This document shows positions 2,391 through 57,185 of a stretch of DNA of 64,000 nt, one piece after another. Numbering within the stretch: the stretch's first letter is position 1; every line of letters begins with the position of its first letter. This stretch comes from Glycera tridactyla. Lineage: Eukaryota. The DNA lies in assembly GCA_965644265.1 (NCBI GenBank), contig OZ286469.1, forward strand, positions 64,728,001 to 64,792,000. Reading direction: 5' to 3'. Made by a program: the position numbers and the translations under genes. The notes beneath the pieces were generated by a model. It was not told the origin of the DNA, did no database searches, and was given only the letters and a program-made list of their open reading frames with translations.

Positions 2391-2451
2391 GATATGGCTG
2401 CTTGAATATAATTATGTGAAATGTAAGGAAACTAGCTACATATATTCTTAC
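2391..2451 (-). other. Candidate 61-nt RS-exon downstream of the 2451/2452 site
   Basis: Begins with the GTAAGA of the AG|GT site and ends at a second donor, ATC|GTAAGTTAG (GT at 2390-2389). Confidence 0.4.
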
Positions 2452-2475
2452 CTGAATAAATAAATAAAATCTATA
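2446..2475 (-). other. Candidate recursive splice site (junction 2451/2452)
   Basis: Minus strand: atagattttatttatttattcag|gtaagaata. Confidence 0.6.
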
Positions 2476-3828
2476 TCTATAACTTCAAGAATGCAAGGGT
2501 CAATTTCTGGTTCAGGACACAACAATTCTAAGGATCTAGTCCGTCCTTGAAATGGCCAATGCTAGAAAGGAGCAGTCCACACCCTGGAGGCAGGACAATA
2601 TCATCAACAAAGTGGTGCATGTGGGGGGGGGGGGGAATGGGGGGCTGTCAAATGAGCCAGCCAGCGAGGTTGGCTGGACAGTTGGCAGGACCCAGCGTAC
2701 CTGACTGCTTGCCTGCAGAAGGCTAGTGCTGAGTTCTGCACTCCACATTCCAGGGCCAGTAGAAGCCATGAGAAAAGCCCCAGCTGCCTGTATTTCCTAA
2801 CACAACAAACCCGGGGATGTGCCACTGTGCCTCTTCACACATCATGTGTGCACAAACATCACATAACATGCTCGCCTACCTCAGCACATTTCTAGGTCAC
2901 AACAATCACACCAGAAGCATTGTAGTCTCGCAGACAACCAGTTGGCATGATTTTGAAAAGATGATGAGATAAAAGAGGGTTACAATACCAGTAATTTCAC
3001 CATCATGTACGCCAACAACATTCTTGTACATGTACTGGAATATCAATGGTAACTATTCGTACGAGTAATCATGACAGAATTTTTAAGGACCTATTAAGAG
3101 AAGTTTACATTCCTTAAGAGTATTTTTGGGGTAAAAAAAGTCGAACTCTTTGTTCCAAAACAAGATAGTTGCATCCCTGTGAGGATAAAATCGTCATTCA
3201 TTCATGATTGCATGGAATATGTCAAGTGACCTATTTCATAATTGGGAAATGGAAGTTGAATCTGGAGCCATAATTTCATGCTATTAAATCAACCCATCAT
3301 GAGGAGTGAAAGGTAGAGATTGGATGTAAATTATACAATATCTGGTAGCCAGTGGCTCGGTAAGAATGTTCAAGGGTAACATCCATCTCTTAGGGATGCT
3401 GGAGTAGCCATGGAACCAAATTCAGCATTCACTCATTGCCAGAGTATTTTTCAGATATTGAGATCTTTCCTTCTGAAGCCTAGTGAAATGCTCCTATACC
3501 GCCCCCAAAATAAAGGATTGCTTCAGGCATATGATTGGGCATATTATACGAAAATATTATAAAGAATTCACTGCAAGGCTTGTGGCAGTGGCTCTGGCCT
3601 TTATGAGTGCAATATCTAGGTAGCCCATGTTGACCCCAATGGGGCCAGCGGCCTACATGTCCTACATGTAGCGCTCATGTTTTGTATCAATTTTGACAGA
3701 TACATGCCATCTTGTACCTGCAGGCCAATCCAATTGTGAGAAGGGCCCTCCACTGACCAGATGATTCCTCCCCCAATCTAACCCCGCCAGATTAGCTCCT
3801 GCTCTTCGGCCATCCAGGCCATCATGGA

Positions 3829-3975
3829 CCTCCACATTGTGGGTAGGCCTGGGTTCTGCCCCCCCCCCTTTTCGATCCAATAATGTCTCCTCCATTGTTA
3901 CGCATACCCTCCATATTGTTGGTAGGCCTGGGTTCTGGGTCCCCCTTTTCACCTTTTTGATCCAATAATATCTGC
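3829..3975. repeat. Imperfect direct repeat, 2 units about 80 bp apart
   Basis: CCTCCA(C/T)ATTGT(G/T)GGTAGGCCTGGGTTCTG...GATCCAATAAT(G/A)TCT occurs twice. Confidence 0.75.
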
Positions 3976-4240
3976 TTATGACCCAGAATACTGTTCAATC
4001 AATCGCCAAACAAGATGAAGAGAATTTAGTAATGAGTATCTTACATCAACAGACAGTTGTCAGACAAGAGACAATTCTATGTCTGATATATCTAACAAGG
4101 CTCTAACTCCCCAAAATGCCACATTTTGCTTCGAATTTTGGCACACTAGACTCAGTACATTTCAATATCTGCATATCTTATTCGATTATCTTGACTTATC
4201 TTATGATTTCATGATGGAGTTTGAGGGATGATGAATCAGT

Positions 4241-4270
4241 ACTCACCTAAAACATAGAGAAAATAATGTG
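4241..4270 (-). other. Candidate recursive splice site (junction 4246/4247)
   Basis: Minus strand: acattatttttctctatgttttag|gtgagtact. Confidence 0.7.
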
Positions 4271-4378
4271 TTATTTCACGAGATCATCACAGGTTTTTCT
4301 AAATAATGTGACTGCTATCATCACCCCACTTATCATACGAATGAGCAGCCAACATAAAGGCTGGATTCTCAAACTTAC

Positions 4379-55300: not shown

Positions 55301-55344
55301 GGGCTCTTCTGATGATTTTGTAAGCCATTCCATGATGAAAATTT

Positions 55345-55640
55345 ATAAGATTGAAGAAAAGGGAGAGAAGGAGGGGGAGGAGGAGGAGAAGGAGGAGGAG
55401 GAGAGTGCTTTCAGGAGGAGGTGGGGTGGGGGAAGGAAATGAAAGAAAAGGCGGGGGGGGGGGGGGGAGGTTGGGGAGGACAAAATGGTCAGAGGAGAAA
55501 CCCAGAATAAGGGGAGGGTGAGGATGAGAAAAGTGGGTGTTTTGGGTAGGATGCAGAGGGATGGAAAACGAGAGGAGGAGGAGGAGGAGGAGGAGGAGGA
55601 GGAGGAGGAGGAGGAGGAGGAGGAGGAGGAGGAGGAGGTA
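55345..55640. repeat. Purine-rich low-complexity tract with (GAG)n (55571-55638); further GA tract at 55930-56035
   Basis: Directly visible; accounts for the poly-E, poly-P and poly-S ORFs. Confidence 0.95.
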
Positions 55641-56837
55641 GTGATGGTGGCAGTGGCAGGTGGGTTAGGCCTCGTAACATAACAACTTATCACATAATCA
55701 ATAGCTTGCTAAACAATCCAATCAAATTCTCCTTAAATGCAAGTGGTAATTGCATTCAAGGATGTATGTATTCGACTGAGCAATTGCCACCATTACTGTC
55801 TGCAGACCGAGTGTGGCATGCCATCATAGCAATCTCAACTGATTCATCACCATTATCTCATACTTCTCAATCAGCACCACCATCTGACATCACCCCTGCC
55901 ATGTGAGCTCACCAAGAAGATAAAGAAGTGGACAAAGAAGGAGGAGCAGGAGCAGGAGCAGGAGAAGACGAAGGAGAAGATGAAGAAGAAAAGAAGAAAA
56001 AGAAAAAGAAAAAAGAGGAGAAGAAGAAGAAGAAAATTTCAAAGCAAAGTCAATGGACAACAATGTGAACTTGAATTTTTCACATTTTTTGTGATTTTTC
56101 GATCATCAAAATCAGGAAAAAGCTGAGAGGAGATCTGCCATCTTCGTTATTTACATCCAGACAGATTCCCCTACCCCCTTTCTTGAGATTATCATGAAAA
56201 GCCTTATCACAGGCGCTTAACATAACCTTGAATCTACAAATGACCAACCACTGATTCTGTTCCCTGTCATTCTGATTTAAATTTACTACATCCAATTCAT
56301 TACAGGGCACTGACAACACAGCCTACAGGCCAAATCCACACCCACTGGGATCTTAAATCTATTTCATTCATACAATCTGACCTTTTCTTTTGTCTCTAGC
56401 TATAGAGAAGAGTTGAGAAAATCAATCATATGCTGATTGTAATGCCAGCAATTGTGAAGCAAAATTTTGGAAACACTGCTGAATTTCCTGTGAATACCCC
56501 TCATATTCTCAAAAGTATCTGTTTTAAATCTGCCAATCAGAATACAGCAATCACACAATTTTGATTGTCAATAAAATTTTCAGAATTCCAAATATTTTCA
56601 GAAAGTCTGTCTGTAGCCCCTCAAAAGTTTTTGGTTTGTTGTTTGTTTGTTCTTCATCCCATCAGCAACACCTGGGGGCTATATTGAGATGCACATAGGA
56701 TAGTCATGGCAGATCAAGATTTTTTTCTGGGTCCCAAAAAAAGGTGAAATTTCATTCACAGACTCAAGACATCATTCCTGATGAGAGAGACCAAAGAGTG
56801 ACTGCCTTGCCATGGAAAGCAGTCTCTCATAGAAATA

Positions 56838-57014
56838 CAGTCGAACCTGCTCTAAAGACCACCTCTCTATAATGACCACCTCTCTATAAAGACCACTTGA
56901 GCTGCGACCGTGGTAGTATTTTCAACAGTAAATGACCTCTCTATAAAGACCAACTGCCTATAAAGACCACTTTTTGATGCAACCGAAGGCGGTCTTTATG
57001 GACAGGTTTGACTG
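56838..57014. mobile_element. MITE family A, copy 5, nested in an older family-B-like element (~56775-57100)
   Basis: TA|CAGTCGAACCTG...CAGGTTTGACTG|TA. Flanks carry family-B-like motifs (CCTGATGAGAGAGACC, AAAGCAGTCTCTCA; GATGAGAGG, GGGTCTCTT, AGTTACACTG). Confidence 0.88.
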
Positions 57015-57155
57015 TATTTAAATTGAAGACCAGCCCATGAAAACAGACTGTGATGAGAGGTCCATCTCTTTCATGGGTCTCTTTCATCATAAGTTACACT
57101 GATAATTTATAGGAGTGTTACTTATCTGCTTCCAGGTGCAAGGACAAACTAAGGA

Positions 57156-57185
57156 AACTTACCTATAAACAGACAAAAATGTACA
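57156..57185 (-). other. Candidate recursive splice site (junction 57162/57163)
   Basis: Minus strand: gtacatttttgtctgtttatag|gtaagtttcc. Confidence 0.72.

Follow-up and report, generated by a model that had tools for sequence, protein, structure and literature searches.

Four candidate recursive splice sites, each followed by an AT pseudo-donor, in a putative long intron of Glycera tridactyla

Exploring a stretch of 64,000 nucleotides from Glycera tridactyla (assembly GCA_965644265.1, contig OZ286469.1, positions 64,728,001 to 64,792,000 of the forward strand; hereafter the window, numbered from its first letter), we found that its minus strand carries four composite elements. In each of them a pyrimidine-rich tract ending in TAG directly abuts a strong splice donor and is followed, 37 to 47 nt downstream, by the motif MAG/ATAAGT (a slash marks the splice boundary), i.e. 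the donor consensus MAG/GTAAGT with A instead of G at position +1. The explanation that best accommodates these data is that a long minus-strand intron is cut by four ratchet points, the sites of recursive splicing, into pieces of about 13-24 kb, and that each ratchet point is accompanied by a pseudo-donor on which U1 would dock. We assign this explanation, which includes the proposal that most of the window belongs to a single long intron of a minus-strand gene, a joint probability of roughly 0.55. Recursive splicing at the elements, considered by itself, appears fairly likely. The further proposal that recursive sites of this animal, and possibly of a wider lineage, carry as their mark a dedicated dead donor, an invariant MAG/AUAAGU, which lies 37-47 nt downstream and is never ligated, is held tentatively, at slightly less than even odds.

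Four junctions of acceptor and donor share one architecture

The four elements are given below, where the length of the unit is counted from the G of the junction GT through the last G of the AG that precedes ATAAGT.

57120-57185, minus strand: element 1; pyrimidine tract, TAG/GTAAGT (AG end 57163, GT start 57162), 37-nt unit at 57162-57126, CAG/ATAAGT at 57128-57120.
43474-43548, minus strand: element 2; pyrimidine tract, TAG/GTAAGT (AG end 43526, GT start 43525), 46-nt unit at 43525-43480, CAG/ATAAGT at 43482-43474.
19386-19452, minus strand: element 3; pyrimidine tract, TAG/GTAAGT (AG end 19430, GT start 19429), 38-nt unit at 19429-19392, CAG/ATAAGT at 19394-19386.
4194-4269, minus strand: element 4; pyrimidine tract, TAG/GTGAGT (AG end 4247, GT start 4246), 47-nt unit at 4246-4200, AAG/ATAAGT at 4202-4194.

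All four junctions read TTNTAG/GTRAGT, with GTAAGT in three and GTGAGT in one, and the tracts hold 13-16 pyrimidines in 19 positions. The hallmark of a ratchet point, a strong acceptor directly abutting a strong donor, is thus present at each of the four sites. The region upstream of 57163 is free of AG for at least 60 nt, and the nearest upstream AG is located at -53 of 43526, at -54 of 4247 and at -24 of 19430, so that three of the four elements possess an AG-free zone longer than 50 nt, 19430 being the exception. Branch-like motifs are present as well, e.g. CTAAT at -30 of 57163. The units of 37, 46, 38 and 47 nt that follow the junctions are in no case a multiple of three in length and contain stop codons in two of the three frames. 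A sequence-only reading of this DNA had described the sites as zero-length exons; the acceptor does abut the donor, but what follows resembles a cryptic exon of 37-47 nt closed by an AT pseudo-donor. At element 2, a TGCATG (Rbfox-type motif; minus strand, 43462-43474) was observed 2 nt past the pseudo-donor, as a single instance.

The junctions exceed the expectation from base composition

To place these junctions among all similar sites, we listed every YAG/GTRAG of the whole window. Six were found on the minus strand (57163, 51231, 43526, 19430, 4247 and 2452) and three on the plus strand (16945, 30038 and 34370); by chance about three bare YAG/GTRAG are expected per strand, and about 0.5 preceded by a pyrimidine tract on the minus strand. 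Of the 20 bases upstream, pyrimidines account for 14 at 57163, 15 at 43526, 16 at 19430, 15 at 4247, 13 at 2452 and 7 at 51231. The five minus-strand sites with a tract named by the sequence-only reading (57163, 43526, 19430, 4247 and 2452) are therefore all in place, with the letters as it quoted them, although its list missed the bare site 51231. Its statement that plus-strand sites lack such a tract was likewise borne out, the three sites having 8-12 pyrimidines in 20.

Examination of all 230 AGGT tetramers of the minus strand revealed that a pyrimidine tract together with a pyrimidine at -3 precedes 4 of the 5 that continue as GTRAGT versus 16 of the 225 others (Fisher p = 2e-4); the corresponding figure on the plus strand is 0 of 1. 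Given this association, the listed sites exceed what composition predicts, even though the minus strand has 2.6 times as many pyrimidine runs as the plus strand. The spacings between the four supported sites are 13.6, 24.1 and 15.2 kb, which would fit the subdivision of a long intron.

The motif downstream of the junctions is a donor consensus with A at +1

The 8-mer AGATAAGT occurs exactly four times on the two strands of the 64 kb, every time on the minus strand, and its copies are positioned 37, 46, 38 and 47 nt past the AG/GT of 57163, 43526, 19430 and 4247, respectively. A Markov model predicts about 1.1 copies per strand, and the probability that all four would fall so placed is, by a rough analytic estimate, about 1e-11. 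Sets of five drawn at random 20,000 times, from all positions or from the AGGT sites, included none in which four members shared any 8-mer. The composite pattern of junction and motif matches these four elements only and was found 0 times in 100 shuffles of the window.

BLAST of 800 nt around each site detected no similarity between sites save a nearby repeat resembling a miniature inverted-repeat transposable element (MITE), which does not cover the sites, and the spacers between junction and AGATAAGT are unrelated among the four. Because spacers and flanks are unrelated, the elements appear to represent one two-part signal, maintained independently four times, and not copies of a repeat.

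Within the motif MAG/ATAAGT, position -3 is C, C, C and A, and the bases beyond +6 are variable. The predicted duplex with U1, computed with the canonical U1 5' end, which may not be that of the host, is -5.1 kcal/mol for CAG/AUAAGU and -3.6 kcal/mol for the AAG/AUAAGU of 4247, as compared with -11.8 kcal/mol for a perfect site. Pairing this weak would tolerate hardly any further mismatch, from which the invariance of the other motif positions would follow. A search between +15 and +110 of the four sites for a canonical GT donor gave best matches of only 4.5-5.5 of 9. Hence, where a ratchet point of the fly type would have a canonical cryptic donor about 40-80 nt downstream, these sites have an AT pseudo-donor at +37 to +47 instead. 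The motif also differs from the donors of U2-type AT-AC and of U12 introns, as ATAAGT is neither ATATCCTT nor the U12 sequence RTATCCTT and the next acceptors end in TAG, not in AC. Adenosine-to-inosine editing of the A at +1 was considered and judged unlikely: ADAR disfavors a G as 5' neighbor, and G is the 5' neighbor here.

The window resembles one minus-strand non-coding unit

The features of the window as a whole point to the following unit.

1-64000, minus strand: putative transcription unit of the host gene, intronic entirely or for the most part, as suggested by base skew, GTAAGT and AATAAA counts, pyrimidine runs and the lack of a Pfam domain.

A sense strand is expected to carry a surplus of donor-like sites and fewer poly(A) signals. 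In the window, GTAAGT is found 15 times on the minus and 4 times on the plus strand, and AATAAA 27 times on the minus and 50 times on the plus strand. Pyrimidine runs of at least 12 nt number 200 on the minus and 77 on the plus strand; part of this excess comes from long microsatellites at 55365-56034, which are purine-rich, (GAG)n and (AGA)n, as read on the plus strand and CT-rich on the minus strand. The G+C content is about 41%. When the window was divided into 2-kb bins, A exceeded T on the plus strand, i.e. T exceeded A on the minus strand, in 32 of 32, and the sign of this skew was unchanged across every gap in the assembly. An excess of T over A on the coding strand has been given as a general eukaryotic pattern (PMC5786239). 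The gaps consist of eight runs of N, including 24364-24508 and 42093-42556, the nearest of which lies 970 nt from any site; a gap could hide another site.

No Pfam domain was detected in the 19 longest open reading frames (ORFs) of the window, so that neither an exon nor the gene of a mobile element could be identified. An Rfam scan of the whole window returned no match, and an exact look-up of 10 of its ORFs in a protein collection found 0. Given that skew and signal counts are those of a sense strand and that neither Pfam nor Rfam gave a match, the window appears to be a single non-coding unit transcribed from the minus strand.

A similar pair of conserved islands occurs in two metagenome contigs

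Scanning metagenome contigs with the composite pattern gave 104 hits, mostly in ORF-dense, prokaryote-like contigs; the chance expectation, a rough estimate from an assumed collection size, is about 55 to a few hundred. No hit shared sequence with the window, and among ORF-poor contigs the orientation of hits relative to T>A skew was not significant. A group of hits with T-tracts (L014 and L092) was rejected as belonging to a plant contig with a PPR-E gene, and a further hit (L062) was rejected as bacterial.

Two hits, L003 (2128-2202) and L054 (reverse complement, 873-940), are located in unrelated ORF-poor eukaryotic contigs of two assemblies which over about 1.2 kb share only two islands. 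The first is a 27-nt identical stretch of pyrimidine tract plus TAG/GTGAGTAT and the second is GTCAGATAAGT, the spacers between them being 50 and 43 nt. Ratchet points of the fly type are expected to conserve the junction strongly while the cryptic exon diverges. The pair shows such a pattern and is suggestive of a recursive site that, in another organism, has been conserved together with its AU pseudo-donor, part of the match being imposed by the search pattern itself.

A pseudo-donor may define the cryptic exon without being ligated

In the mechanism that we propose, U2AF and U2 at the acceptor and U1 paired to MAG/AUAAGU would define a short cryptic exon, as happens at recursive sites of flies and vertebrates. 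Joining of the upstream exon to the AG would rebuild a strong GURAGU donor at the junction, which would drive the next step, and the cryptic unit would be removed with the rest of the intron. The AU site would dock U1 but give no ligated product, since with A in place of G at +1 it could not complete splicing, and being unligatable it would keep the frameshifting cryptic exon out of the mRNA. Strand-specific juxtaposition of acceptor and donor, AG-free zones, regular spacing, uniform skew, the lack of coding sequence and the downstream motif at four sites all favor recursive splicing of a minus-strand transcript. As to the claim of the sequence-only reading that a minus-strand unit is spliced recursively, the sequence features favor it at four of its sites, but the fifth, 2452, may be due to chance.

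Several points weigh against the proposed mechanism. The pseudo-donor is backed by only four examples from one locus, the A.C mismatch more than halves the predicted pairing with U1, and the motif might be recognized by a protein. The exons of the host gene, including the end of the upstream exon, lie outside the window, and the single-intron proposal is drawn from skews. Continuity across the gaps cannot be proved, and the spacings of 24.1 and 15.2 kb include estimated gap lengths. In addition, the metagenome scan as a whole stands at about the level of chance.

The elements might be used by the spliceosome for regulation and not to remove the intron in steps, either as decoy or poison units that retain the intron or as sites of first-step-only cleavage at AG/AUAAGU that abort some transcripts, e.g. 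in autoregulation of a gene for an RNA-binding protein. A natural AUAAGU 5' splice site does undergo first-step-only cleavage in Aspergillus telomerase RNA (PMC4299874), and the cryptic units of the window would shift the frame and bring in the stop codons described above. We nevertheless consider a regulatory use rather unlikely, as four units 13.6-24.1 kb apart in one intron suit subdivision more than a switch, the GTAAGT or GTGAGT of the junction greatly exceeds the AU site in strength, which makes re-splicing at the junction the outcome to expect, and several dead-end cleavages in succession would be expensive for a long gene.

A comparably small chance attaches to the possibility that the sites are recursive but that AGATAAGT, instead of docking U1, serves as a protein-binding site, e.g. 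for a factor that enhances or silences splicing, or forms a hairpin with the pyrimidine tract. The predicted U1 pairing of only -5.1 kcal/mol and the TGCATG that follows the motif at 43526 speak for this, as does the finding that at 57163 and 19430 (57128-57180 and 19386-19445) the tract UUGUCUGUUU could form a stem with CAGAUAAG from the pseudo-donor, about 10 bp long if its G-U pairs are counted. The predicted RNA folds of the elements, however, were not significant (z-scores of -1.27 to +0.70), and pairing of the UUGUCUGUUU/CAGAUAAG type is absent from the other two elements. Moreover, the motif equals the 5' splice-site consensus everywhere but at +1, including M at -3, which would be an odd coincidence for a protein-binding site.

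We regard it as improbable that the elements have nothing to do with splicing, being regulatory modules at the DNA level or what remains of an ancient mobile element, reduced to two short motifs. It is true that AGATAAG fits the GATA-type site WGATAR and that three of the four sites have a copy of the MITE-like repeat (about 170 bp) within 150-420 nt. Against such an origin, the orientation of the elements on one strand agrees with the skew of the whole window, the acceptor architecture is complete (U-rich tract, AG-free zone and TAG) and accompanied by two motifs of U1 consensus, and the sites lie outside the repeats, with unrelated spacers and flanks.

Finally, chance matches favored by a T-rich minus strand, or ordinary exons whose first letters are GTAAG by coincidence, could draw on the abundance of pyrimidine runs on that strand, on the three or so bare YAG/GTRAG expected per strand and on the lack of independent support for 2452, which may be such a case, but for the four composite sites it is effectively refuted by their co-occurrence with the only four copies of AGATAAGT, by the draws and shuffles reported above, and by the absence of any ORF, Pfam domain or GT donor after the sites.

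Comparison with known recursive sites and decoy donors

In Drosophila, intronic ratchet points with cryptic recursive-splicing exons (RS-exons) were reportedly described by Hatton in 1998, Burnette in 2005 and Duff in 2015, and Joseph et al. are said to have located, in 2018, the cryptic downstream donor of the fly at 40-80 nt. The elements of the window resemble fly ratchet points in that a pyrimidine tract plus YAG is fused to GTRAGT deep in what would be a long intron, with several such sites evenly spaced (kuz has two in about 50 kb), in that a short, poorly conserved and out-of-frame cryptic exon of about 50 nt would be recognized and then discarded, and in that the donor at the junction is stronger than the downstream site. 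Fly ratchet points are recognized via a cryptic exon of about 50 nt that is closed by a canonical downstream donor, which the junction donor then outcompetes, and inclusion of the cryptic exon causes frameshift and loss-of-function phenotypes (Joseph 2021, PMC8605326). Unlike the elements found here, in which the downstream site is an invariant MAG/ATAAGT with no GT alternative, the downstream donor of the fly is a canonical and functional GT, and the exon is included if the junction donor is weakened. The putative units of the window are also slightly shorter (37-47 nt) and belong to another lineage.

Vertebrate RS-exons (Sibley 2015; Blazquez 2018, PMC6224609) likewise occur in very long introns, and there too the RS-exon is defined first, after which its donor faces competition from a reconstituted 5' splice site. 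They differ in having GT donors and in that the mRNA can retain them, as poison exons or as annotated ones, under the control of the exon junction complex (EJC; PMC6224609), whereas the second donor seen here appears unligatable. Look-alike donors that engage the spliceosome without yielding a spliced product have been described in other settings, namely the AUAAGU of Aspergillus telomerase RNA (PMC4299874), whose letters are identical to those of the motif reported here, and the decoy 5' splice site in the negative regulator of splicing of Rous sarcoma virus (PMC3082916). Those sites serve to make an RNA 3' end or to restrain viral splicing, whereas in the window the look-alike is coupled at short distance to a putative recursive junction in an animal intron.

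A 2026 preprint states that recursive splicing is documented in Drosophila and mammals and that its cis signals are unidentified (PMC13105047). Our literature search combining recursive splicing with molluscs or with ATAAGT/AUAAGU returned nothing relevant, and the layout of a recursive junction plus a dead second donor was not found in the literature searched. If real, a series of ratchet points in an animal that is neither insect nor vertebrate would extend the known range of recursive splicing. An invariant AU pseudo-donor would, if confirmed, provide a testable rule both for the recognition of recursive sites and for a cryptic exon that never reaches the mRNA. The exon would be impossible to include, a hard-wired solution to a risk that is dealt with in flies and vertebrates through competition between donors and through the EJC. 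The composite pattern also offers a sharp query by which such sites could be found genome-wide from sequence.

Weaker sites and repeats of the window

Two further minus-strand sites were recorded.

2385-2474, minus strand: fifth site listed by the sequence-only reading; (TTTA)n-like tract, CAG/GTAAGA (AG end 2452, GT start 2451), without AGATAAGT.
30021-30088, minus strand: weak extra candidate 30066; pyrimidine tract, TAG/GTAAAT (AG end 30066, GT start 30065), TAG/ATAATC 39 nt downstream, both motifs degenerate.

Downstream of 2452, at a distance of 61 nt, lies a canonical GTAAGT in the poor context ATC/GTAAGT (2390-2385); a donor match of 6 of 9 within 95 nt is found at 31% of random positions. 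Since 2452 lacks AGATAAGT and about 0.5 chance sites are expected on its strand, it may be a chance match, or it may be an ordinary cryptic exon. At 30066, UAGAUAAUC is predicted to pair with U1 at about 0 kcal/mol; if this candidate were counted, it would split the 24.1-kb gap and give spacings of 13.6, 13.5, 10.6 and 15.2 kb. The bare site 51231, TAG/GTAAGT with AGATATGT at +51, was rejected, as it has no pyrimidine tract and sits in a local repeated motif.

The MITE-like family, whose members measure about 170 bp and contain inverted repeats, is present at 978-1143, 5033-5122, 19006-19158, 43672-43839, 52076-52241 and 56836-57017. Three of these six copies account for the proximity to elements mentioned above, being placed either upstream or downstream of them (rough chance about 3e-3), which could reflect an insertion preference or coincidence. 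A tandem repeat with a 65-bp unit (3.2 copies, 95% match) occupies positions 29252-29459 of the window.

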